This document shows, piece by piece, positions 7,837-24,114 of a stretch of DNA of 64,000 bases; the first letter of the stretch is position 1; every line of letters begins with the position of its first letter. The notes beneath the pieces are model-generated. The model saw only the letters and a list, made by a program, of their open reading frames with translations, was not told where the DNA came from and searched no databases. The stretch comes from Hyaloraphidium curvatum SAG 235-1 (taxonomy: Eukaryota; Fungi; Monoblepharomycota). Location of the stretch: positions 124,001 to 188,000 of the forward strand of contig JAIVFI010000031.1 of the NCBI GenBank assembly GCA_025558095.1. Reading direction: 5' to 3'. The translations under genes and the position numbers were made by a program.

Positions 7837-9375
7837 ATGCCCGCCGACGGCGCTTCCCCCGTCGATGGGGAACCTCCCGCGCCCGACGGAGATTCGGGCG
7901 CCCCCGGCCCCGCAGCCCGGCCACCGGCCCCGGACAAGCCGGAGCCCGACCGGCAACACAGTGCCCTGCAGCTCTCTGTCCTCACGTGCGCCTTCGTGGG
8001 CGTGAACGTGCTCTGGAACTACATCATCCTCTTCGCGACCCCCTTCTTCATCTCGCTGGGCGTCTCCAAGCCCGTGGTGCCCCTCCTGTGGCTCGGCGCC
8101 CCGATTTCGGGCATCGTGGTGCAGCCCTGGATCGGCGCATTCTGCGACGAATCGACCTCCCGCTGGGGCCGGCGCCGCCCGGCCCTGGTCTGGTCCATGA
8201 TCCTCGCGCTGGCCTCGCTGGCCGCCATGGCCACCTCCCGCGCCATCTGGGCCGTCGCCGCGGCGTTCCAGCTGCTCAACGTGGCGGCAAACGGGGTCGA
8301 GGCGAGCTGCCGCGGGCTGGTGATGGACTCGATCTCGCCGGAGCAGCAGCCGGCCGCGTGGGCCTACGTGGGCATGGCGAGCAACGTCGGCACGCTGCTG
8401 ATTAGCGTGGCCGGCGGGATCGATTTTGTCTCGCTTGCGCCGGGGACCATGTCGCAGTTCCAGTGGATGACGGCGCTTTCTGGCCTCTTCCTGGTCGCGA
8501 CGGCCGTTGTCACTGTCTTTGCCGTCAAGGAGACGCCGTACCGCCCGCTGCGCCGCGTTCCGACATTCATGGCCGGGGAATCGGAGCCCCTGCTTTCACT
8601 GGCCCCCCTCCCCGAGCTCTCGTGGGGCTCGCACCTGCAACGCTCCTTCGTCAAGGCCTTCCGCTCCCTCGTGCTCCCCGTCCCGCCCATCCTCTCGCTC
8701 ATCAACACCGCCAGCTTCTGGGGCTGGGGCGCCGGCTCCCTCGTGAGCATGTTCGGCACGGCCTGGGTGCAGCTCCACGCGCCGGACCCGGACCTGGGCC
8801 TCCGCGTGGCCAGCCTCTCGAGCGTCGCCGGGACCCTCCTCGCGACCGTGTGCACCCTCACCGTGCCGCCGCTGGTGCGCCGCCTCCGCGTGCCGATGAA
8901 GTGGGCCTGGGTCGCGGGGAACCTCACCGGCGCGGCGCTGCTCGCCGCCGGCCCCGCGTTCGCGGGGGACATGTTCGCCTCGGCGGCGGTGCTCGCGAGC
9001 ACGGGGTTCTACTGGATGGCGCTGGTCTGGGTGCCCATGGCGCTGCTAGGCGAGTTCGTGAGCGCCAGGACGGCGAGGCCGGGGGAGGAGGAGGTGCTGG
9101 ACTACGACGCGGAGGAGGGTTCCATTGCGGACGTCGTGGACGGGGCGTCGACGAAAGAGCCCCCGGAGGAGCGGGTCACGGCCGGCGGCTCCATCGGCGT
9201 GCTCAACTTCTACCAATCCTTCCCCAACCTGCTCACGATCGCGCTCAGCACCGTTATTTTCGGCGTCGCCGATGACGGCGCGGATACCATGGCGGTCGTG
9301 GGCACGTCCTTGCAGGTCGGGGGGGCCATGGCGCTGATCTCTGCCTTCTATGCCGCACGGATACCCAACGAGTAG
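7837..9375 (+). CDS. MFS sucrose/alpha-glucoside transporter (SUT/SLC45-like)
   Basis: Intronless 512 aa with ~12 hydrophobic helices; WLGAPISGIVVQPWIGAFCDESTSRWGRRRP signature; GVLNFYQSFPNL. Confidence 0.85.
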   Translation: MPADGASPVDGEPPAPDGDSGAPGPAARPPAPDKPEPDRQHSALQLSVLTCAFVGVNVLWNYIILFATPFFISLGVSKPVVPLLWLGAPISGIVVQPWIGAFCDESTSRWGRRRPALVWSMILALASLAAMATSRAIWAVAAAFQLLNVAANGVEASCRGLVMDSISPEQQPAAWAYVGMASNVGTLLISVAGGIDFVSLAPGTMSQFQWMTALSGLFLVATAVVTVFAVKETPYRPLRRVPTFMAGESEPLLSLAPLPELSWGSHLQRSFVKAFRSLVLPVPPILSLINTASFWGWGAGSLVSMFGTAWVQLHAPDPDLGLRVASLSSVAGTLLATVCTLTVPPLVRRLRVPMKWAWVAGNLTGAALLAAGPAFAGDMFASAAVLASTGFYWMALVWVPMALLGEFVSARTARPGEEEVLDYDAEEGSIADVVDGASTKEPPEERVTAGGSIGVLNFYQSFPNLLTIALSTVIFGVADDGADTMAVVGTSLQVGGAMALISAFYAARIPNE

Positions 9376-9469
9376 ATAACTTGTTTCTAATGCGATGGTA
9401 GAGCTGGTTCATCACTGCGTCGTTCGACGAGCTGATCGAGGCCAGCGGCCAGCGGGCGAATGATGAGGC

Positions 9470-9650
9470 AGTGGACCTCGACGCGTCGAACTTCCGTCCA
9501 ATCTTCCCGGCCTCACCGCGCCGAATCCACCTCCGCTTCTCCTCTCTGGAGGGAGAGAGGTTGGTTAACTCCTCCGTGAATGCTCAGGACCCGAGAAAGC
9601 CCTGCCCGAGAGCAATCCACACTCACCCATTCAGGTTCACGCCGGGTCGT
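9470..9650 (-). ncRNA. candidate omega-RNA (Fanzor guide scaffold)
   Basis: Directly 3' of the RuvC stop codon. Nested stem at 9576-9620 (GTGGA-T-TGCTC/GAGCA-TTCAC enclosing CAGGGC/GTCCTG), perfect 7-bp hairpin CCTCTCT/AGAGAGG at 9541-9560, 12-bp palindrome TCGACGCGTCGA at 9478-9489. Boundaries are guesses. Confidence 0.4.
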
Positions 9651-9651
9651 T

Positions 9652-12600
9652 TTATCCGGCAGTTCCGCGCAAAGCAGCGGGGTGGGTGAAGGTGGCAGGC
9701 CGCTGGCCGGTGGCGATGATGTGCAAGAACACTCGAATGAGGCACAGCGTCGCCGACCGATTCTTGTTGACTTCGAGCTTGTCCTTGAAGCCGTGCTTGT
9801 CCGAGCGGCCGGTACAGGACGGGCAGACCTTGTGCTCGACGTCGCCCTTGCGCAGAGGGTACGCCTTGAGTTCCGAGAGGCACGTGGGGCACCGCTGCGA
9901 CGTGTTGTGCTCGCCGAGCATCACCACCAGGAAGTGGCGCGAGAGCAGCTCGGCGATGCCGCCGCGGTACGGCATCTTCGACGACGAGCCCTGGCCAGCG
10001 CCGCAGAGAACAATGGGGTTGGGCACGGCGGCGATGCGGTCGACGGCCTGCTCCGCGGCCTCGCGCGCCGCGCGCTCCGTGATCCTGAGCTCCTCCGCGG
10101 TAGGCTTGCGGCCACCGTGCGCGCCCTGGGCCTGCCGGACGGCGGCGTTGTAGGTCTCGACATACGTCTTGCGCCGCCACAGGGCCTCGCAGGCCTCCGT
10201 GATCCAGTTGACGATGGCGTTGCTGCGGGCCTGGAAGGCGCGGAACCGGTAGGCCTTGGCCAGCTGGGTTTTGCGGCTCTGCGCGTGGTCGAGGAGGGGG
10301 CCGGCACTGCGGAGGAAGGCGGCACCTGGGCACGGGAAAGAGGTTAGCACTGCGGCGCTCAGAAACGCGGACGACAGCTCGCGCACCGGCCATGACGCCG
10401 TCCATGGGGTACGGCGACCTGGAGATCCCGCGCAGCCCCTGCGACATCGCGCCATGTGCCTCCCACCAGGCCGCCGACCTCGCCTCCTCGTCGCGCGCAC
10501 GGTACCCGGCGGACGAGAGGGGCTCGAACTTGCGGTGCACGGTCAGCTGCTCCAGCTGGCCACCCTCGCCGCGGAAGTGAACGGTGACGCTGATCGTGTG
10601 GCCGCCGGTGCCGGGGTCGACCGCGACCAGGATCGCCTCGAGGGCGAGGCTGTCTGCCGCCTCGACGGTCGTCGAGTGCCTGAAGAAGTACGGCACGTCC
10701 TTGCCATCCGTCTGCAGCTTCTGATATCGGTGGCCGCCGGGGCCGGATGGATGGCGACAGCAAAGCTGTCCTTCCAGGACCACGATTCGCGCGTGGTCAT
10801 GCGTGCCGGCGGCTCCGGCGCGAACGTGGCAGCACGACGAGGAGCAGCGGCTGGATATCGGGGTCGAGCCGCAGGCCGGGGGCCCGCGCGGGGCGGGAGG
10901 AGAGGGAGGAGTGGGTGGAGGAGCAGGAGGGATGCCGGCGGTCGCGCTCGCGGCCTCGTTGTCCGCCGCCGGCGCCGTTGCCGTGGTCGCGGCCTTGATG
11001 TGCCGATGCCCGGCGAGTTCGGGCAGCGTGCGGCGAAATGCGTTGCTGGTCACCTGCGCATATTGCTCAGGCTGCGCGACGGACCACGTGCACGACGTCG
11101 AGCTGGCGGAGCAGTGGCTGCGCGGCACCGGATGGCGTGAGACTCTGGCGCCGGCACGCACATCAAAGCTGGAGACGCACCCGCAGGTCGGCATGCATCC
11201 GTCGCAGTCTCGCTTTGCCGCCTCGCAGGGCTTGCATGTCGGCAGCTCGTACACGCACGCGCGGTTGGCCGCGGCACAGTCGCTGATCGCGGGCGTCAGC
11301 AACTCGAGATTAGGCATATCGGCGTCGTTGATCGTGCTTGACACCTACGAGCAGCCGGGGTACAGCCGATCGCACTTGCCCTTCTTGCAGCCCCTGCAGT
11401 CGATTGGCCACCGCGGGTTGTCGCCGAGGATCGGATCTCCCGCCTGCCTTTGAGCGGTCGTCAGCATCTGCCCGCAGTCAGCTGCCGCTGCGCCAAGTGA
11501 CCCACCGCAGTCTTGGTCCGCACGCCGCCGAGTTGGTTGTAGCGGTGCGGATGGCGCTGGTTGGTCACAAGTATCCGCGTTTCTGTGCCGTTGGACTGGA
11601 AGTGGTTAGACTTGTAGGGCTCGAACCTGTCCACGTGCGCGTCCCCGCGGTCCATCGCCTGACCGCGTACGACGCGGGCAAGGCCGGGGATCATCTTGTT
11701 CATGAGCGCGGGGAGGCCGGGTGCCGTGGCGGTGTCGATCGATGTTTGCTGATTCTGCTTGTCCAGGGCATCCTCGACGGCCTTGATGCGCGGCACTTTC
11801 CAGCCGCGAACGACGTCGGCAAGGGCAAACGCGACGGGCTTGCCGTCCATGTCGGTGCCGCCCTCCTTCAGCCGATGCAGATGTCCGATATAGGCGGAGA
11901 TCCAGCGCCCGAACGCCGAGTTGTCCACGGGCTGGAAGCGGTCCCCGGCATGGAGCCGTGGCACGACGTTCTGGCGCAGCTCGCCCGCCACGACCCCGCG
12001 GCGGACCATCACCAGCTGCTCCACCAGAGTCTGCTTGGTGAGCTCGGTTGCGCCCAAGCCGACCTCGGTGCGCACGTCGTCCTTGTGCTTGGCCGTGCGG
12101 ACACCTCCGTCCGCAACCGTGAGCAGGTTCAGGAACAGGTCGAAGGCGGCCTCGATCGGCCCGCGCTTCTCTGCCGACAGGTCCGCGGTGAAGCGCTCTC
12201 GAAGACCGGCAACGTCGCCCTCCACCTCGCCGACCAGGATGGTTGCGCGGGCGTAGATGTCCAGCACCGTCTCGGCGGGCGTCTCGTCCGCCACGGCCCC
12301 GGCAGTGTCCGCGTCGTCGTCGCCCGTGGCCTGGCGCACCCCGGCGAACTCGACCTCCTCCGCCTCCTCGTCTCCCTCTTCTTCGGTCGCGACCGCGCGC
12401 GCGCCGCGCTTCGGCGGAACGAGGACGCAGCGGAGGCGGTAAGCCAGCGCGTTGATGAGCCCGCGCGGGACCCCGGGCGCGAACGCCTTGGAGAGGTAGG
12501 CGTGCGCCTTGTTGTACACCAGGCGGCGGAGACCGTCGCGGGCGAGGCGCGTGAGGGTGGCGAAGAGACGGCCGGAATGGATCTGCCCGAAAGCACCGGG

Positions 12601-15600
12601 GAACAGCTTGTAGGAGTGGTGAATGGTCTCGTGCTCGATGAACGAGTCCGAGATTGCCAGCGACGCGGCGGCGAGCGAGACCATGAGCGGGGTTCCGGAG
12701 GCGTCGGAGTCGGGAAAGTTCGCGTAGGCCCGCGGGAGCAGGCGCTCGATCGCCAGGCGCGCACCCTCGTCGACGTTTGCCGCGGCGCGCCAGGAAGGAC
12801 CGACGACGGCGGCGTCGCCCGGCACGAGGGAGGGGTCCGGGATGAGGTTGATCGCGGTGATGGAATCCGCGAGGTGCGACGGGAGCTTGACCCCCGAGAT
12901 CGGGTGCGGGGCCATGGCGACCTCGACGTCGGTCTGCCGGATGAGCTCGTCGTTGGTGACGGGCTGCAGCCGCAGGCTGGCGACGCCACCAGTGGAGAAG
13001 GGAAGCGGGGTGGTGGAGACGTTGCGGCCGGCAGAGGCGGCATCTAGCACCTTGCGCATGTTGACGCCGAGGCCCACGAGTAGCGCGGGGCGGAAAGCTC
13101 GGAGCTCGTGTCGCAGGAACTCGAGCTGCATGCGGCGGTGGAGCGCCATCGCGCGGCGAGCCTCGTCCTTGGTGAGCTCGGGGGCCTTGTCCCGACCGAC
13201 GCGGAGCATTAGGGGGAGATCGCAGCAGCAGCACTCGTCGCCGTCGTTCTGCGCGGAGGCGTCAGTCGAGTGCTCGGAAGGTTAAGGCAATCAACACCCA
13301 CGAAGAGCATCGGGCACATCCTGTTGACGTCCGCGAACACGATGTTGCCCAGAACGCGGCAGCGCGCGGCGGTCGCAGCCTGCCAGTGAGGGTCCTCGGG
13401 GTCCTTGAGGGGCACGATCTCCTTGATCACGTCGATGTCGGCCTTGATGGCCATGATGTCCTTCTCCAGGACCTCGGCGGGGTACCGACCGGGATCGCCG
13501 CGCTGCGTCGATGTGTCAGCACGGGTGAGGGTGTGTGTGCTTCCGAGCGACGGGGAGCCCACCTTGGCGCGCTCGAGGGCGCTCTGCAGCCGGTGCAGGG
13601 CGACGACGTCGAGAACGTTGAACAGGAGCTTGTTGGTCGGGTTGAGGAAGTGGCGGCGGGAACCAAGGAGCACGTCGAGCTTGGGGCAGTTCCCAAAGAG
13701 CAGCGTGACGGGAAGCGAGGGGTCAAAGGCCGGCGCCGACAGGTCCCCGTACACGAAGCGGCGGGTGGGATCGTCCAGGGCGCCGCCGCGGTGGAAGGCC
13801 AGCCCAGGCTCTCGGGCGAGCACGCGGAACCTGGCTTCCACGAAATCAACAAAGGCAAGGCCGCGCAGCTGCCTGCCGGCGGCTTCTTGCATCGCGGTGA
13901 GGAGGCGATCGCTGCCCATTGCGATGCTGGTTTCGCGCATCGCCTGCCGATAATCGCGCCGGAGGTCGGGGTCCACGGGCTGCGGCGCCGGGATCTCGGT
14001 GCGGTCGGGTCCCGCATTCTCGTCCGTCGCAAATGCCAGCTCGGCAGGCAGCCCGAGGATCTCGTCCGCGCGGTCCTGGCCATCCGCCCCGCGGGGACTC
14101 CAGGATCTGAGCGGCGCCAGGCGGAGTATGTTGCGTTGCAGAAACAACCTCTTCCTTCCGTCCTCCTGGTCGGTTGAAATGGGCTGGTCCAGGTACTCGC
14201 GCGCGAGGTCCGGGAAAATGCGGCACAGAGTTCCGACCTCCATCTCCGCCGCCCGCTCCAGATGCGGGTTGCGCTGCCGCGGCGGCTTGCCGCTTTTCGC
14301 GAGATCCTCTGCGTAGGCAGCCCCCGCGGCCGCCTTCTTCAGCTTCAGCCACTCCTCAAAGCCACTGCGGATTCGCACCGGGTCCTCGTCCGCTTGCAGG
14401 CCGATCCGGGTTAGTTCGGCATCCAGCTCCCTGAGGAAGGCGCGGATCTCGGGGATCCCCGGACCCATTCGAGCTGGATCTCCGCCGCCCTCGAGCCTCA
14501 GCGCGGTGGCGACCGCCGCGTACGTATTATCAATTAGGGCTTCCGGATCGGAGCAGTTGAGAGACGGAGGCACTCCCGGGAACCACGCAGCCCGCTGCTC
14601 TTCGTTCAAGTGCAGGTACGTGTCCAGGACGACGCGGAATGCGGCATTGCCGGCCATCAGCAACCTCTGCTGCGTGCGGAACGCCAGCGCCATGAAGTCG
14701 CCGAACTTGCGCCTCTCCGCGAGCTCGACCTCGGCCTGCTTCTCCGTGCCGACCATAGCATGCTGCTTCCGCATAAAGTCCTCGATGTCCGCGTCCGACG
14801 GCCTGCCGTTGCCCTGCCGCACCTGCGCCCAGATGAAATCCTTCACAGGGCCCGACCAGGGCTGCACCAGGTGGTCGAGGACGGGGCCAGGGATCGTGAC
14901 GGGGCTGCTGCCCGCGCCGCCGCCCTTGCGCGCGTCTTCCTCCTCCTCCTCTTCCGCCTCGTCCATCTTGGCGTCCTTCGGATCCAGCTTGAAGCCCTCG
15001 TCGGCCTTCCCGCGGCCGCGCTTCTGCTTCTTGGGCGCGGGCGCGGGAGCCGAATCCTGGCGACCTGCGCCCCGCGCGTTGCCCGACGCCGGCGCGTGAT
15101 CGCCGGGAACGTGCTCCCAGCGCAAGCCTTCGGCGTCCACTTTGCGCAGCCTAACCAACAGGCGCGGCCATTCGGCCCCACGACCCTGCTCCGGTGCTCC
15201 CTCTCGATCGCCCGCGGGTTCCCCTGCACCAGACGTCTCCTTGGTCGCGCTCCGGGGATCCACAGTCGCGTGCAGCGGGTCGAACATCGGTTCGGCCCTC
15301 CCCTTGCCCTTGGCCTGCCTCGTTCTCTGCCTAATCTCGTCGTCCTCTGGAGCTTCGTCGTCGTCCTCTTCCGGATCCGGACCCGCCGCGGGCGCCTCGT
15401 CCATCGGCACGTCGTCCACGGCAGTCGCGGCGCCGCCGGCGGGGGCGTCCTCCATCATCGCCTCCTGAGCCGGTTCGGGCGATGGTGAAGCCTCGGGAGG
15501 GTCCAGCTCCATGGGCGCCGGCGCGGCAGCTCCCGCTGCGGTGCCTCCGGGGGGTCCTGCGTCCGCGGCAGCTGCCGCACTCCCGCCCGAGCTCCCGCTA

Positions 15601-18600
15601 GCAGACCCGGAGGCGGCTTCCGCCGCGACTGCCGCGCACACCGCGTCCCTAGCGGCGCCCGGCGTGGCGGTCGAACGGATCGCGGTGCTGCCGACAAGGA
15701 AGATGTAGCCGTCCCCGTCGGGCTCCTCCTTGGCCGCGTTCCAGGCGTGCTTGCCGACGACCTCGCGCCTTTCCTCCTCGTTCTTGGCCCGCCGCTCGAA
15801 CGCGGCCTGGATGCCCTCGCCCATCTTAATGGCGACCTTGACCGCGGCGTCTCGCTCCGGAGTCATGGCCTGACTGGACGCCGGTCCCGACGACGATCCC
15901 GAAGTCGGGCCCGCGCTGGCCGATGCCGATGCGCCGGCCGAAGGGTCGGCCGTCTGCTGCGGGTCCACCGGTGCCGGGGAGGAAGGACCGGGCGCGGCAG
16001 CGGCGGGCAAAGGCTGCGCGAGCGCGGCCTGGCGACGGTTGTGCGTGAGCTCGATGTCATCAACCGCCGCCGTTCGCTCCCCACCTTCAGGCTCACGTAC
16101 TGGTGCCGCCGTCGGGGCCTCGGAGACGGGGTCCCGGCGATGCTGCCCGGAACGGGCCGCTGGCCGAGCTTCTCGAGCACGTCGATGAGCTCCTCCTTCA
16201 TGCTCTCGCGCGTCTTGGCGTCCGCCTTCGTGAGCTTCTCGCCCGGGTCGTACCGCCCGTCGAGCCTCCGAAGACCGCTGCGCAGCTCGTTCCGCCGGGC
16301 CTCCAGCGCCTCCCGGTGGTCCGCAGCGAGTGGATCCATGGCAAAGACCTCGGCCAGGGGCACGAGGAGGGGAAACATGGCCTGCGCCGACGGCGCGACG
16401 TCGAGCGGAAGCCGGAGACGGCGCTGCGGCGTCCCGTCCGCCCGCTTGCCCTCGGTCTCGTGGTAGATGCGGACCAGCTCCTCCTTGTCGGCCGCGATGA
16501 GATCGCGGGGTTTGGGGGTGACGAGGTTGTTCTGCACGACCATGTCCAGGCACGTACGGATCCAGCCGGACCCCGGAACAGCTTCCCGCGCCTGGAGCCA
16601 CGCGGCGTCAATGATCGCCTTGTTCGCCCGCAGCACGTCCCGGAACCGCTTGGCGCCCTGCGGGGAGGGACAGTGAGCCGCCGTTCCCTTCAGCCTGATC
16701 GCAAAAGCTCCGAATCAACGACACCCACGATGAAGTGGCTCGTCGTGTTGTGGCTTCCCGCCACGAGCACCGATGCCTTGAGCTCCTCCGCGGTCACGTC
16801 CAGGTGCGCCAGGATATCCTGCTTCAGGAACAGGCTCGGCGTCGCCCCCTTGACGTCGGTGAACAGATCGGCGATCCCGTGTATGGCGCCCTCGCGGACG
16901 GCCATGTACAAGGGGTCGCGGTCGCTCGTGACGACCAGGCGCAGCTCCTGTTCGCCGTGGGAATCCAACCGCAGCTCCGCGTCGCGGACAAAATGGCCGT
17001 CAGCCTCAGCCACCACGAGCTGAACATCCGTCGCGCCGAACATGGCGTGCGCAGCCCGGAGGCGGTCGCGGACGAGGCGCGAGAGAACGAGCATGAGGCC
17101 GGGCCCCAGGCGAGCGGAGCTTGCAACGTGGCCGGCGCGAGCCGTTGCTAGACCTGGATGGAATGAGATGAAGGCGGTGAGCGGGAGCCGTTTTCGGGGG
17201 GTGGTCCCTTGTGAGACCCACGATTGGCACCGGTACGATCGTCCGGCCGGTCGAAGGCCTTGCGCACGCCGTCGGCGCCCGGCTTGCCCGCGACCTTGAG
17301 GAAGCCCTTGAGGGCGCCGTTGAAGCTCTCCGAGTTGGCCGTCCCGCGCTTCTCGGCCTCGTGCACCTGCTTCCGCAGGGCGTAGAACGCGCCTCCTTGC
17401 TGCTGCTGCTGCTGCTGCTGGCCGTCGAACACCTCCGGTACCAACTGCCACGGCTCTGCATCCGCTGCCCCGGGCAACGCGATCGGGTGCTTGCCCGCGC
17501 GGGCCTGCTGTGTTCCCTGCGCGGACGGCTTGGGCGCCCCGGTCTCGAAGTAGACGACAACGGTGTCGCCGCGGGCGCGAGACGCCGGCGTTGCCCTGAG
17601 CAGCCGCTTAAGCTTGTCCACGAACGCGCGCGCGAGCTCCCCCAGGCTGTCCTCCACCCAGGGGAGGGTCTCGTCGGCCGGCGGCAGGGTCATTGAGTCC
17701 GCACGCCCAAAGAGGAGCGGCGCCAGGGCCTGCCGCGCCTTGGCCTCGTAATCCGAGCCGAGGATGGAATGCAGGATCACGGAGGCGTCGACGTAGAAAC
17801 AGATCCGGTTGAAGGGAATGCGCTGCCGGGCGAGGTGGTCGTCGATCTGCAGGCGGTACGATGCGCCGCCGTGCAGCTTCATCGCCACGGGCCAGATCTC
17901 CTTGTTGGTCGCGGTCTTGCCGCCGCCGTGCTTGCCGCCGATGGTCTGCACCTCGCCTTCCGTCAGCGTGCCGGTGAGGCCGCCGCCGGCCTTCTTCTTG
18001 CCGCCCTTGCCGCCTGCCCGCGCCGTCGTGCCCTCGGGGGTGTCCATGGCCGGCAGCTCGACGCGTGGGCCGCGCGCGGGGGTTGCTGCAGCAGAAGTTG
18101 CCGCGCGAGAGGGCTGGGACGGAGAAGGCCCGGAGGAAGCGGGCTCGGAGGGAGACGGAGCCGCGGCCGGGGTGGAGTGCGCGGGCGAGACCGAGGGGCC
18201 GGGCGCGGCACCAGCATTGGCGTTCCGCAACCCCGCCCTGCGCGAGGTCCGTTCCGTGCCCACCCCCCTGCCGCCAGTCGTCACCTCCGGATCCGGGTCG
18301 CTGTCCTTGTCGTCGCCCTCGTCCTCGTCCTCCGACCGAACCCGCTTGGGCGTCTTGGGCACCTGGCCGCCCCTCCCACCCCGACCACCGCCCCTGCCTC
18401 CCCTCCCCCGCCTTCCTCCGCTCGAAGTCGCGTTCTTGGCCCCGCCGGGTAGGCGGACGGTGGCCAAGAGGGTGGCCTCGTTCCAGAGCAGGTCCCCGAC
18501 CTGCTCGTCCCCGACCTGCCCGTCTTTCTCCAGGACGAGGCCGCTCCGTGTGCGTAGGTAGAAGGACGTCTTGGGGACGCCGAGGCGGGCTGCGACGGAT

Positions 18601-21228
18601 TTCTGCGCGCGGATTGGGAGGTCAGCAAGACAGCCGGGTGCCATGGTGAGAATTTGGCCCACCTTGAGCGCCGAGATCCGCAAGTCGGAGCCCACGCGGA
18701 CCGTCAGGGTCTTGTTCAGCGAGTGCAGGCCGTCGCTGAGGGTGATGGGGAAGGAGGAGACGAATAGGGTGAACTTGCGAAGCCGGCGGGCAAAGACGGA
18801 GCTGCCGGCCTGGATCCCGCACTGGCCCAGCGACGCTGCGGGGCAAAGTCGCCTGCGCCGATGGTGGTCGGAAAAGAGGTCGACGGCAGAGACACGGCAG
18901 CCGATGCGGTCTGCGACGAGGACCTGTCGCGATCGGGAATGGGCGTAGGAAGGGCGTCAACTGCTTGCGCCTCGACAGGAATGGATCGCGACGAACCTGG
19001 AGATCAGACACCGTATCCGAGGCGCGCATCGAGATCTCAACCCCGCGCGAGGCGTTGTGCCCAGCCACAACGTCGGACGGGAGGTGCAGAATGAAGAGCA
19101 CCTCCGGCTCGTCGACCTCGCCCGCCTCGGCGGCGGTCCACGGGCCGGCCAAGGTGAACCGCGAGAGCGGTCCATTCCAAGGGACCCGGGGAGCGGGCTC
19201 GTCGTCGGCGCCACCCGCAACAGGCAGAGAGCGCGCGCCGGCGTCATGAAGAGGAGGTCCGCTGGGCGGCGCCGCCTCCGACGCGACTGCGGGGCTTCCG
19301 CCCTCTCGCCAAGCGGACGACGACGGCCGGGTGAGGGGCGTCGGGGGGTCGTCGTCTCCGTCGCGGCGCTCTGGGCCTGCCGCCACGACCGCAGAAACGG
19401 CGGGGTTGGGGGAGGGAGGTCGGGGAGCTGGTCGAGAGGCTGGGGTCCAGGGCGCGGGCGCATTGTCGACAGCTCCGGCGACGACCTTGGCCGCAACAGC
19501 GTCGGCAGCCAGTGGCCCGGGCCCTGCGGCAAGCCCGGCATCGGCAGCGCGCGGTGCGGGTTCGGCGGCGGAGGCGTCCGGCTCGGAGGGAGGGTGGATG
19601 GTCAACGACGGAGCCGGGATGAGCGCGGCGCCCGAGGCCGGCCTGACGGGGGGTGTCCACGAGGCCGGAGGCGTCTCCATCACACCACACTGGTGGTCGT
19701 GTGCGGTAGCATCGGCGACGGCGGCGGAGGGCGCCGCGGAGGCCGGACGCCAGGGGCCCGACATCTTGAGGCGCCAGGTGAGCGCGGCGCCGACGAACGT
19801 TCCCCATTCGGAATCTGAACAAAGAGAGGCGGCACGTCAGAGATGGCACCGAAGGGCCCACATGGCAGCTCACCGGTCAGGTAGTCGAGCTTGCCAGGAC
19901 GGTCGCACATGCGGTCCCTGAGCTGGAAGGCAATGACAGCGTGGCGGAGCTGGGTGCGGGCAAGCTCGGCCTGCGCGCGCCTGGCGAGCTCGGCATCGCA
20001 CATGGCAACGACGTCTGCGCCAGCGGACGAGTGGGGAGCGTCAATGCTGCGAGCTCCATGCGATCCGGAGCGATCAAAACCCACCGGCTGCGGTGTGACG
20101 CCCCAGCAACTTCTCGGCGGCGCGCGCCGCGCAAGGAGACCCGAGGCGTTGGGCCGGGCGAGACCGTGATGACGGCGCCGCAGACGGCGCGACATCTTTG
20201 GCGCCGGCCCCTTGCACTTCGACAGGCTGCGCCGGGTGCGCGGGTCCCGGGCCGCTGGCAGGGGTCGGAGCGACGCGGCGAACAAGGCGCACCCCGCTGG
20301 CGTCCCCATGCAACGATGCGGATGGTGAGGACGGCCGGGCGACGTGAGCTCCGAGGCGGTGCACAGATCTTGTCGACTTCGGCAACGACCCAGAGATTCG
20401 CGCAGGTAAGGCGGGGAAGTCGCTCGAGCGGCAGTCGGGGCTCCCGTGTCCGACGAGAAAGACGGCGACCAGAAGCGCGACGACGGCCAGGAAAGCGGCG
20501 GCGACTCGCCGGGTAACGAGAGCCGTCCAAAGACCCTTGGCAGCGGCGGCGACCCCTTCGAAGGCTCCCTTGGCCACTCCCTTGGCGATGCCGGCAACTG
20601 ACTGCATCGTGATATCCAAGAACGCCGCGAAGCCGAGCAACACGCCTAGGGCCATGCACAGACCCACAGCCGCGGTCGAAGCATCGTAGCTAACGCGTCG
20701 CGGGTGATGCTCAGGGTGCTCCACCTTGCCCGCGGCGACATCCTCGACCCTGGTGGATCTCCTCGCGTCCCGGGCCTCGGCCTTGAGCTGCCTCGCGAGT
20801 TCAATCTGCACCCTGCGTTCGGTTCTCCGTTCTCGGGCAATGTACTGAGCCACCCGCTTGTCCAGAACCGCGGCGCGGACCCGGCAGTAAGTCTGGAACA
20901 GGCCCTCGTAGTCGCACTTGCCGCCGTCGTGGAGGGCCGACGCTCGCTTGGCGGCGACCTCCTCGTCGGCCGTCTTGCGCGCGCGCATGTTCATCTTGCT
21001 TGCCTTCCCCCGGGGAACGGCCCTGCGGGGCGACGTGCCGTCTTCGGGGTCGACGAGCTCGCAGATCTCGAGCCGCAGCGCCGCGGCCTCGGACGTCTTG
21101 TCGTACATCTCGTCGAAAAAGCCCAAGATGACGGACGTCGGCGCCCCCTGAAGCGCCGCGCTTATGTCCTCGGGCGGAACAGCACCCGGGTCGGGCAGGT
21201 CGACTGCGGCCTCGGCGGCCCCGGCCAT
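9652..21228 (-). CDS. giant multidomain Fanzor/TnpB-family fusion protein (~3,580 aa): TM-Ubl-Ubl-PIN(XPG/FEN1-like)-UDG-like-2xZn2Cys6-RuvC/ZnF
   Basis: Exons 21228-20085, 20014-19874, 19814-18997, 18923-18663, 18602-17222, 17153-16729, 16657-16097, 16028-13563, 13502-13302, 13248-11506, 11443-11349, 11282-11181, 11117-10387, 10325-9652 sum to 10,743 nt (3,581 codons). All 13 introns are GT..AG, 53-73 nt, phases consistent. RuvC motifs ILVAVDPG, IVLCGAG, LGEHNTSQRCPTC..CPSC, VNKNRSATLCL, QRPATF. Confidence 0.75.
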
Positions 21229-23164
21229 GGTCAGAATCCGGAAAAGATGAGATCAGAACACGGTGAAGAGCACGAGGTCGCAGAGATCTGGCGCGGGAAC
21301 GGCCGTGAGCAAAGGCCGGCGAAAGGTTCTGCCGGCTGGGCCCGAGCGCCGGCTGCACGGACCGCCGCGGCCGAGGGAGCCCCCGCAAACCGCAGCTTGC
21401 GACCCAAAGGTCGCAGAACCGGGCCAGACCGGGTCTCCGCCGGCGGCAGGCGCGGATGGCCGGGGCATAAAGTGCCCGAGATGGAGGTCGCCCCAGGCCA
21501 ACCCCCCCCCCCTCCGCGGCGCTGCCCGGCCGCGCCAGTCGCAGATCAAGACAAAAAAGCTCGGAAACTTACGCGACTGCTGGCGCCGGAGGTCTGGTGC
21601 GTGAAAGACGACACGGGGGGAGTCCTTTGTTGACCTTGTTTGCAAGAGGCGTCCTGGTCCCACGAGCATCAGGTCGCCACAGGCGCGTCCGAGCTACATG
21701 CAAGCCGCTTCCGAGGCAAAAGATCCTCCCTCAAAACAAAGAAACGTCCTAGAATTCGAAACGAAGAAGATCCGCCGCATGCGAGAGAGCGACGCCCGCC
21801 ACGTCACCCGTCCAGCTACCGTTTCAGAGACTCAGGCAAAACCACTATTCCATCGATACAATGGCGAACAATAGCAAGAGAGCATGCGAGTAGACGAGGA
21901 CCGGATGACACCGCCGTCGCGGCCGCTGAGCTGCCCCTAGCTGGGGTTTGCCCGTTGGCCTTGCCGGCGGCGGCGTCCCGTGCCGCTTGCGCACGGACGG
22001 AAGAAATGGCAGTGTGTCCGATCCGGTGGCACGCGATGCCGGCCGCCCGAGGCAACGAGTTTGACGACGGTCCAGGCATCCAAATGGTTCCGGGAATGAG
22101 CAGCGGGCCGCAACACCGAGGAATCGCGAAAGGGGCGGATGCGGTTCCTAGCGACGACGAGTCAGCCGACACCGCGGATAGCATCGCGGCGCGGACACTC
22201 ACATTGGCGGTTCACGGGCACTCTGCTGCCGATATACGCCAACGCCAACGCGTGGGGGAGTAGAGGGCGCTCTGCCGGATACGATCGAGGTCCTCGGCGT
22301 GCCGTCGCAGGAGCCGCGCTCCGCAGCGCCGCGTCAGAATCGTGCCCGGGAGACGCCGACTTATAGCTAAAAGAAAAGAAACGGTCCCGCAGAAGCAGCG
22401 CAACGCGCTCCCCAGCGTCTCGCCGCCGCCAGAGACGGTGGCACGGAGCCCCCTCGACAGGGTACCTCCTCGCAGCCAAGAACAGCAACGCAAGCGCGGC
22501 CATCCAACCACCGCCGGCGGCGACGAGGCCGCACAGGCAGGCGGTCGAACCGGCGGCGCTCAAAGCTCCGCAGGCAGCGACAACTGGCATCGGGCGCACA
22601 CCCCATCCGGCGGCACAGGAACAAGGCGCCCAAGACAAATCCACGCCGACATTCTTCCTGAGCGGCCCCCAAAAAGAAATCTCCGAGCAATAAAACGACG
22701 GGAGAGCCGCGCCGACGGCCCGCGCCCGACCGCCGTCTGCCCGGGTCAGCTGCCGTCGCGCAAAACACCCATCGACGGGCACCACGGGGCTACGCGATGC
22801 CGCCGAGGTGTGTGCAGCCACGTCGCTTGGTCGAACACCGCCGGCAAGGCCTGCCGCCGCCGACGATCGCTCCTGACCGCGGTGGGGCCCAGCGTCCGCG
22901 ACACCGCCCCGCGACCGAATCCCGGCGCCATCGCCGGTAGAGGCGCCGAGAAATGAACCAGCTGAATGAAAACCGATGCACAGCGTGGCGCGCCGTGCTC
23001 TGCAGCGCGTGTGAGGGGTTCGGAGGTTTGGCTGTTTGCGCGAGTCGTATATTGCCGTTTCTCCAAAGCTTGCCCACCCGGCCCCACCCCGCACACAAAA
23101 CTGGGCGCCGAATCTCCCATCCCCCAGGCCACGGCAAAAGCAGGAACCAATAGGAAATACCCGG

Positions 23165-23340
23165 TAAGGGGGAAGGGGGAGGGGGGGAGGGAAAAGGGGG
23201 GGGGGAAAGAAAGGGGAAGGAAAAGAAGGGGGGAAAGGAGAGAGGGGGGAGGGGAAGGGGGGAAGAGAAGGAGAAAAGGAAGGGGGGAGAAAGAAAGGGG
23301 AAAAGAAGAAAGGGGAAAGGGGAGGGGGAGAGGGGAAAAA
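23165..23340 (+). repeat. polypurine (G/A) low-complexity tract
   Basis: ~175 nt almost entirely G and A. Confidence 0.9.
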
Positions 23341-23414
23341 TCTCCGCTTCTCCTCTCTCTGTCGCACCTCTTTCCTCGGACGATTTGGAACGCGTGTCGC
23401 CCTCCGGAATCGCG

Positions 23415-24114
23415 ATGCTCCCCGCCCGCCTGGCCCACACGCGCGTCGTCCTGGCGTCGGCCTCGCCGCGCCGGAAACAGATCCTGGAGGGCATCGGGAT
23501 CGCCGCCGAGGTCGTCCCGAGCACCTTTCCCGAAACTCTCGATAAGGCAGCGTTCGCGTCGCCCGCGGGATACGTGCTGGCCACTGCAGAGGGCAAGGGG
23601 AAGGAGGTGCTGGAACGCGTCGCTGCGGCGGGCGGGGAACCGCCGTTGGTCGTCGCAGCGGACACGATCGTGGTGCTCGGGAACGAGATCCTGGAGAAAC
23701 CGGAGTCGCCCGAGGCGGCAATGGACATGCTCTCGCGGCTGAGCGGGCGTTCCCACACGGTGCTCACGGCCGTCGTGCTGCTCCACCCGGATCCGCGGGC
23801 GCCGGGCGGGCCGCCATTAAAATCGGCGTTCGTGGAGGAGACCGAGGTGTTTTTCGCCGAGCTGTCGGAGCAGGAGGTCGAGGCGTACGTCGCGACGGGC
23901 GAGCCGATGGACAAGGCGGGCGGATACGGTGGGCTCCTTCGACACGTGCCTCGTAACACGGAACTGATTTTCTTATCTGCTTTTGCCAGGCTACCAAACC
24001 GGCGCGGGCTCGCTGCTGGTGGAGCGCATAAACGGCTGCCACTACAACGTCGTGGGATTCCCTACGCACCGGTTCGCGCGGGAGCTTCGGCACTTCCTCG
24101 ACAAACTACCGTGA
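23415..24114 (+). CDS. Maf family nucleoside triphosphate pyrophosphatase (YhdE/ASMTL-like)
   Basis: VVLASASPRRKQIL, VVAADTIVVL, ILEKP, TGEPMDKAGGYG|YQ...INGCHYNVVGFP; one intron ~23929-23989. Confidence 0.92.

Follow-up and report, generated by a model that had tools for sequence, protein, structure and literature searches.

Tandem Zn2Cys6 clusters upstream of a Fanzor-type module in a family of giant genes of Hyaloraphidium curvatum

We analysed a stretch of 64,000 nucleotides from the fungus Hyaloraphidium curvatum (hereafter the window; contig 31:124001-188000, JAIVFI010000031.1, in an assembly of 31.9 Mb). A gene on its minus strand, in a region with 66-70% GC (guanine plus cytosine), belongs to a multi-copy family of about 13.5 kb per unit, in which full-length paralogues encode proteins of 2449 and 2987 amino acids. 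After splicing, its 3′ part reads as two tandem cysteine clusters of the Zn2Cys6 type followed by a RuvC/zinc-ribbon module of the Fanzor type. The account that we favour, and that we hold as a whole to be moderately probable, is that the Zn2Cys6 pair was inserted upstream of the Fanzor-type module, to which it would add a contact with double-stranded DNA, and that the copy in the window has been frame-shifted. The exons and introns concerned are these:

11506 to 13209, minus strand: E1, the upstream exon, an open reading frame (ORF) of 568 open codons ending in phase 0 at 11506
11601 to 11506, minus strand: conserved motif FQSNGTETRILV..YNQLGGVRT, the final 32 codons of E1, common to a metagenomic relative (L040)
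11448 to 11505, minus strand: intron 1 as found in RNA, 58 nucleotides, GT..AG (junction 11446>11505, cut +1)
11349 to 11447 (to 11443 with the in-frame acceptor), minus strand: E2, Cys1 to Cys4 of cluster 1
11283 to 11348, minus strand: intron 2, 66 nucleotides, phase 2, GTAGGT..CTGAC..CAG, interrupting the codon that follows Cys4 of cluster 1
11181 to 11282, minus strand: E3, Cys5 and Cys6 of cluster 1, a six-residue linker, Cys1 to Cys4 of cluster 2 and one extra Cys
11118 to 11180, minus strand: intron 3, 63 nucleotides, phase 2, GTGCGT..CTCAC..CAG, interrupting the codon that follows Cys4 of cluster 2
10387 to 11117, minus strand: E4, the last two Cys of cluster 2 (Cys5 and Cys6, 11113-11090), then RuvC-I with VDPG after a linker rich in Ala and Pro
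10326 to 10386, minus strand: intron 4, 61 nucleotides, an RNA junction
9652 to 10325, minus strand: E5, RuvC-II Glu, zinc ribbon and RuvC-III NKNRSA, with the stop codon at 9654-9652

Two paralogues are available as public spliced models at NCBI, P0001 (2449 amino acids) and P0076 (2987 amino acids), each named 'hypothetical protein'. Both clusters are contiguous in these models, at residues 1977-2040 of P0001 and 2519-2579 of P0076. Word-based protein searches returned only these two and no public model with the C-terminus of the window copy or of its close copy on contig 8.

In the window, 13 Cys are encoded by exons 11349-11447, 11181-11282 and 11117-10387, from a first Cys codon at 11398-11396 to a last at 11092-11090. 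Read across E2 and E3, cluster 1 is C-x2-C-x4-C-x6-C-x2-C-x6-C; read across E3 and E4, cluster 2 is C-x2-C-x6-C-x6-C-x2-C-x6-C, with an extra Cys in its third loop. The spacer between them is six residues. The Cys codons of E2 lie at 11398-11396, 11389-11387, 11374-11372 and 11353-11351, and E4 opens with x-C-x6-C-T-W, followed by an Ala/Pro-rich stretch and then RuvC-I. An earlier note on this DNA, made from the sequence alone, had written the same two spacings, including the shortened first loop of cluster 1, and they are exact. The six-Cys pattern C-x2-C-x6-C-x5-12-C-x2-C-x6-8-C was found in cluster 2 of the window, of the contig-8 copy (L002), of P0001 and of P0076. Among the window, P0001 and P0076 the spacing is fixed apart from the first loop of cluster 1, whose length is 4 residues in the window against 5 in P0076 and 7 in P0001, where it is acidic. 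The signature C-D-x-x-x-P-x-C and an aromatic residue after Cys6 are kept in both clusters, in the window and in the paralogues; cluster 2 carries the form C-D-G-x-x-P-x-C and a basic (Lys/Arg-bearing) first loop.

The RNA evidence came from the Logan contigs of one public run (X1), labelled 'RNA?', from one study and the sole run holding the stretch. Such contigs cannot give isoform proportions, and rare isoforms are dropped from them. They skip exactly 11283-11348 and 11118-11180, and also 10326-10386, 13503-13562 and 9546-9626, all with GT..AG on the minus strand. Because the assembly holds no intron-less copy, the joined forms in this run are RNA. Both cluster-splitting introns, which the earlier note had proposed as the reason that the clusters were hidden, are real, and their junctions agree to the nucleotide. 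A 38-nucleotide intron ending at 11468 was rejected since it was absent from the RNA, and so was a start at ATG 11467, which falls inside an intron.

Both phase-2 introns follow Cys4 of their own cluster, so that exon E3 consists of the back half of one cluster plus the front half of the next. This layout suggests that a unit which already carried an intron was duplicated to give the tandem pair.

Profile and fold comparisons support placing the motifs among the Zn2Cys6-type clusters, the class to which the earlier note had assigned them. Against Pfam PF00172 (Zn_clus), with its gathering cut-off of 21 bits, the spliced excerpt P0001:1960-2060 scored 27.2 bits (E 4e-6, in two stretches) and its clusters taken singly 21.5 and 21.0 bits; the excerpt P0076:2500-2600 scored 22.9 bits and its clusters 16.1 and 21.6 bits. 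A profile built from the family only, with the window exons as fragments, matched LAC9 (9e-4), PPR1 (5e-3), HAP1/CYP1 (8e-3) and RSC3 among PDB sequences. The AlphaFold model of P0001:1960-2050 has four short helices, each beginning at a CxxC, with a predicted local distance difference test score (pLDDT) of 71-78 in the core. A Foldseek search with this model of the pair returned only Zn2Cys6 structures: HAP1, with a probability of 0.99 and a root-mean-square deviation of 1.2-1.4 Å over 38 residues, as well as GAL4, AlcR, Pho7, LAC9, PUT3 and PPR1. The Foldseek E for this model was about 0.2, a weak value that reflects the small size of the domain.

The clusters are conserved at two depths within the genome. 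A 13.5-kb unit (window 9551-23040) is repeated on contig 8 (319067-332501) with 94-96% identity. Like the window copy, the contig-8 copy is open in E1-E5, and its E1 is 94% identical to that of the window; in a copy on contig 17 (L003), frameshifts interrupt the reading frame. Both of these copies have exactly the Cys codons of the window. Between the window and contig 8, the ratio of nonsynonymous to synonymous substitution rates (dN/dS) was 0.09 in E2, 0.18 in E3, 0.09 in E4 and 0.19 in E5 (0.11 over E2-E5), and the introns differ by 3-9%. Both cluster exons are thus under strong purifying selection. Three older paralogues (L011, L012 and L014) are 53-62% identical to the window in E5 and 33-42% in the cluster part, and they keep every Cys together with the position and phase of both splitting introns; the public models P0001 and P0076 represent two of these three loci.

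Downstream of the clusters, the DPG and the Glu six residues before CxxC agree with the features given for Fanzor/TnpB proteins in PMC10711439, and the residue at the RuvC-III Asp position does not. RuvC-I reads VDPGTGG, with its Asp codon at 10618-10616. The rearranged RuvC-II Glu lies at 9912-9910, six residues before the first CxxC (E-HNTSQR-CPTC-x18-CPSC), and the zinc ribbon CPTC..CPSC occupies 9891-9814 on the minus strand. RuvC-III reads NKNRSA (9768-9751), so that there is an Asn codon (9762-9760) where relatives have Asp. In two key Fanzor papers (PMC10711439 and one other), the only zinc finger mentioned is the C-terminal CCCC finger.

A search with E5 against 1.84 billion representative proteins gave 75 matches, of which only P0001 was strong; the relatives come from metagenome or Logan contigs. 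PF07282 (Cas12f1-like TNB) was matched by 61 of the 74 other relatives and reached 17 bits in the window. None of these 74 has a Zn_clus match or the Cys pattern; among the 75, only the Hyaloraphidium protein has the clusters. At RuvC-III, NKN-RSA is found in every Hyaloraphidium paralogue, among them the window, the contig-8 copy, P0001 and P0076, while most relatives have N(K/R)D-xSA or a close variant with Asp. Four metagenomic relatives (P0002, P0003, P0005 and P0063) also have Asn, as EKN or DKN. Judging from these alignments, the catalytic Asp of RuvC-III has been replaced by Asn in the whole subclade.

In the AlphaFold model of P0001:1700-2449, residues 2060-2449 were confident (pLDDT 80-95). 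This C-terminal part aligned best to fungal Fanzors, PpFz (Z 13.2) and SpuFz (Z 13.1) (VIA, 243-245 residues), followed in the structure ranking by Cas12o and CasPhi, and with a Foldseek probability of 1.0. A PDB sequence search with P0001:1650-2449 gave no Fanzor match; the likeness emerged by structure comparison. The C-terminus is thus predicted to have a Fanzor-type RuvC/zinc-ribbon fold, and the position of the clusters upstream of such a RuvC, as the earlier note had it, is borne out.

The nearest relatives outside Hyaloraphidium indicate how the clusters came to lie there. One is L040, a metagenome contig that is the locus of P0002; it reads QTDGHSTRILV..YNRIGGVRS upstream, and the RuvC-I region of E4 aligns to it with 31% identity (E 2e-12). 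The upstream motif (T/S)(D/N)G..TRILV..GGVR is common to the family, to L040 and to L041, a Logan contig in which it is weaker; L041, too, has the RuvC-I region. Between this motif and RuvC-I, no Zn2Cys6 was found in L040 or L041. At the linker position L040 (540-720) has a C-x2-C-x4-H-x4-C knuckle, with a weak match to Pfam zf-CCHC_6 (15.6 bits), and the linker of L041 has no Cys module. Because the nearest outside relatives have the flanking motifs and no clusters, the pair appears to have been inserted, in this lineage only, into a linker that is variable.

A source for such an insertion may lie in the host genome itself. A six-frame scan with PF00172 gave at least 111 matches there, and many ORFs have tandem pairs; no match was at the window locus or at the paralogues, because their clusters are split by introns between Cys4 and Cys5. 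At least 10 ordinary ORFs (contigs 35, 26, 4, 16, 8 and 30; L023-L032) carry tandem clusters 14-60 residues apart, and this abundance of double-cluster proteins is unusual. Cluster 2 closely resembles the second clusters of the host tandem pairs. Capture of the clusters from a host gene is plausible.

If the clusters act on DNA, cluster 2, with its canonical spacing, its C-D-G-x-x-P-x-C signature and its basic first loop, would serve as an accessory contact with double-stranded DNA for the Fanzor-derived module, near the DNA entry. Cluster 1, whose first loop varies in length and charge, would be mainly a structural zinc module or a degenerate partner. With Asn in place of the RuvC-III Asp in all members of the family, binding of DNA by the module would be more likely than cutting. 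A bolder form of this idea, which we consider improbable, is that an early-diverging fungus has turned a Fanzor-derived module with a dead nuclease into a DNA-targeting domain, in which an inherited core that is possibly still RNA-guided and captured transcription-factor zinc clusters together steer the uncharacterised N-terminal part of about 2000 residues of a self-propagating 13.5-kb gene towards selected sites in DNA.

Several observations weigh against the favoured account. Cluster 1 fits the six-Cys pattern save for its first loop (x4, x5 or x7), and the sequence that follows the clusters shows no evident coiled coil for dimerisation. The paralogue excerpts exceed the Pfam cut-off only narrowly; as whole proteins, P0001 had no Zn_clus match and P0076 reached 11 bits; and in the window and the contig-8 copy neither exons taken singly nor unspliced frames gave a Zn_clus match, as is expected when an intron separates Cys4 from Cys5 in each cluster. 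The pair was folded from an alignment that included genuine Zn_clus sequences of the host, and this biases the fold. In the large model (P0001:1700-2449) the clusters and everything upstream of them had a pLDDT below 50, and a profile of the 270 residues upstream showed no homology to the 74 relatives. The earlier note had the clusters inserted into the Fanzor core behind a WED-like strand; the insertion agrees with the outside relatives that have no clusters, and the WED-like strand found no support in the model or the profile. The Asn at RuvC-III and the splicing of the window copy count against a simple reading of the locus: in this copy the 58-nucleotide splice is four bases off the frame, so that E1 and the Cys codons are not read in one frame and a TGA follows at 11069-11067.

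This frame problem is particular to the window copy. The in-frame acceptor for the Cys frame is the CAG ending at 11444, which would give a 62-nucleotide intron, and the RNA contig uses 11448 instead; in the spliced RNA, no ATG opens the Cys frame. The copies on contigs 8 and 17 have 3 extra bases in intron 1 and no AAAG acceptor, so that the in-frame CAG is the sole acceptor there, and the public models of the paralogues splice in frame at this position. A 3-base deletion in intron 1 of the window copy would have created the upstream AG; the transcripts use this AG, which shifts the frame. The window copy probably makes little or no cluster domain, and the module is probably not translated through. 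The copy looks newly crippled at the level of splicing, unless a small share of its transcripts is spliced at the CAG lying 4 nucleotides downstream.

From here it is a short step to regarding the module in the window as a relic, a pseudogene of recent origin in which the main mRNA loses the frame ahead of the clusters and neither these nor RuvC are translated, and we give this view an even chance. It accords with the AAAG acceptor that leads to the stop and that stems from a deletion not present in the copies on contigs 8 and 17, with the lack of an in-frame ATG in the spliced RNA, and with the fact that no public protein model with the C-terminus of this copy was found. However, all five exons of the window copy remain open, and a minor isoform spliced at the nearby CAG is of the kind that the contigs drop. 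A different matter is what the clusters do. They could be purely structural, stiffening a long linker, as zinc-finger inserts do in some Cas12f-type proteins, and reading no specific DNA sequence. The first loop of cluster 1, the DNA-reading loop, varies between 4, 5 and 7 residues and is acidic in P0001; the clusters lie just six residues apart with no evident dimerisation helix; and of the outside relatives one has at this position a small zinc motif of another kind, C-x2-C-x4-H-x4-C, and another has none. We nevertheless rate this explanation as somewhat unlikely, since in cluster 2 the spacing is canonical and the first loop, which bears Lys/Arg, is in the window near-identical to the loops of host clusters of the transcription-factor type, and since purifying selection on both cluster exons is strong.

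Binding of RNA rather than DNA, for example of an omega-RNA scaffold, is very unlikely in our estimate. The site of insertion, between the N-terminal part and RuvC, is generally known as a region contacting the guide RNA in TnpB/Fanzor structures, and the CCHC-type knuckle that L040 has there is a motif often linked with single-stranded nucleic acid. On the other hand, Zn2Cys6 domains are known as binders of double-stranded DNA, no omega-RNA was identified, and an Rfam scan of window 9300-24000 found nothing. It is hardly credible that the Cys pattern arose by chance in a GC-rich frame or comes from a wrong gene model. In favour of this, the window's own exons have no Pfam match; yet the RNA junctions are exact, the Cys and intron phases are conserved at 33-42% identity, dN/dS is about 0.1, and the matches by Pfam, by PDB profile and by fold are all to Zn2Cys6, so that we rejected this explanation.

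Returning to the favoured account, of a Zn2Cys6 pair inserted upstream of a Fanzor-type module, we compared both parts with known systems. Zn2Cys6 is the commonest fungal DNA-binding domain. With fungal Zn2Cys6 domains (PF00172; GAL4, HAP1, PPR1, LAC9 and RSC3) the pair shares the six-Cys spacing (exact in cluster 2), the C-D-x-x-x-P-x-C signature, an aromatic residue two positions after Cys6 and, in the predicted models, two short helices per cluster, each from a CxxC. It differs from them in being internal, about 2000 residues into a giant protein, whereas the known domains lie near the N-terminus; in having no obvious coiled-coil dimeriser; in the first loop of cluster 1, with 4, 5 or 7 residues instead of 6; and in the phase-2 intron that splits each cluster. 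Against the tandem pairs of the host, the spacing between clusters is six residues rather than 14-60.

Fanzors, which represent the TnpB/Cas12 lineage in eukaryotes, are known as compact, stand-alone RNA-guided nucleases. With Fanzor1 (SpuFz1 8GKH, PpFz 9CF0) the module shares the DPG, the rearranged Glu six residues before CxxC, the CCCC zinc ribbon, a superposition of the C-terminal 350 residues at Z 13 and a multi-copy presence in the genome. It differs in the Asn in place of the RuvC-III Asp, in about 2000 extra N-terminal residues without a Pfam match, in the Zn2Cys6 pair upstream of RuvC-I, and in that WED and REC are not recognisable; an omega-RNA, a transposase and terminal repeats were not identified here, where no dedicated test for omega-RNA or transposon context was made.

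In compact relatives of Cas12 and TnpB, a small zinc module (for example the ZF domain of Cas12f) also lies outside the RuvC/TNB core, as it does in the Hyaloraphidium family. Those inserts are bacterial CCCH/CCCC fingers whose role is structural, whereas the Hyaloraphidium insert is a eukaryote-specific binuclear DNA-binding domain in tandem. In the literature searched, no mention of Fanzor together with Zn2Cys6, GAL4 or zinc cluster was found. The combination of a Zn2Cys6 pair with a Fanzor-like module has not been previously described, and it is so far seen in the gene family of one species.

What sets this family apart is a Fanzor-type RuvC that forms the tail of a protein of 2400-3000 residues, lacks the RuvC-III Asp and has gained a tandem fungal DNA-binding domain. 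The family is a candidate case of a Fanzor that has been domesticated or put to new use. If the clusters do read DNA, it would be a natural case of protein-encoded recognition added to a core of the TnpB family; were the improbable nuclease-dead, DNA-targeting form also true, nature would here have joined protein-coded and RNA-coded recognition of DNA in one hybrid. The intact copy on contig 8 and the two annotated paralogues make the idea directly testable.

In the first approximately 1950 residues of P0001, Pfam matched nothing. The long upstream ORF of 1130 codons is not one exon, because the RNA contigs remove from it an in-frame intron of 60 nucleotides (13503-13562). A further intron of 81 nucleotides (9546-9626) follows the stop codon; its donor lies within the duplicated 13.5-kb unit and its acceptor at or just beyond the 3′ boundary of the unit (9551). 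In RNA contigs from contig 8, the same donor is spliced into that copy's own differing flank (reverse complement). The contig-8 copy is thus transcribed at least at its 3′ end, because the loose end of an RNA contig at 9627 equals the contig-8 flank.

No evident terminal inverted repeats accompany the duplication of the unit. A sequence of 118 nucleotides directly 5′ of the unit boundary (window 23049-23167) matched no Rfam family and is found with 99% identity at at least 8 loci on six contigs. On contig 15 (287480-287949), a fragment of 470 bp that is 99-100% identical to window positions of about 9542-10011 stands alone and covers the region from RuvC-II to just past the stop codon. The RNA depth summed over contigs peaks in 9497-9890, and extra copies of the 3′ end may explain this high depth.

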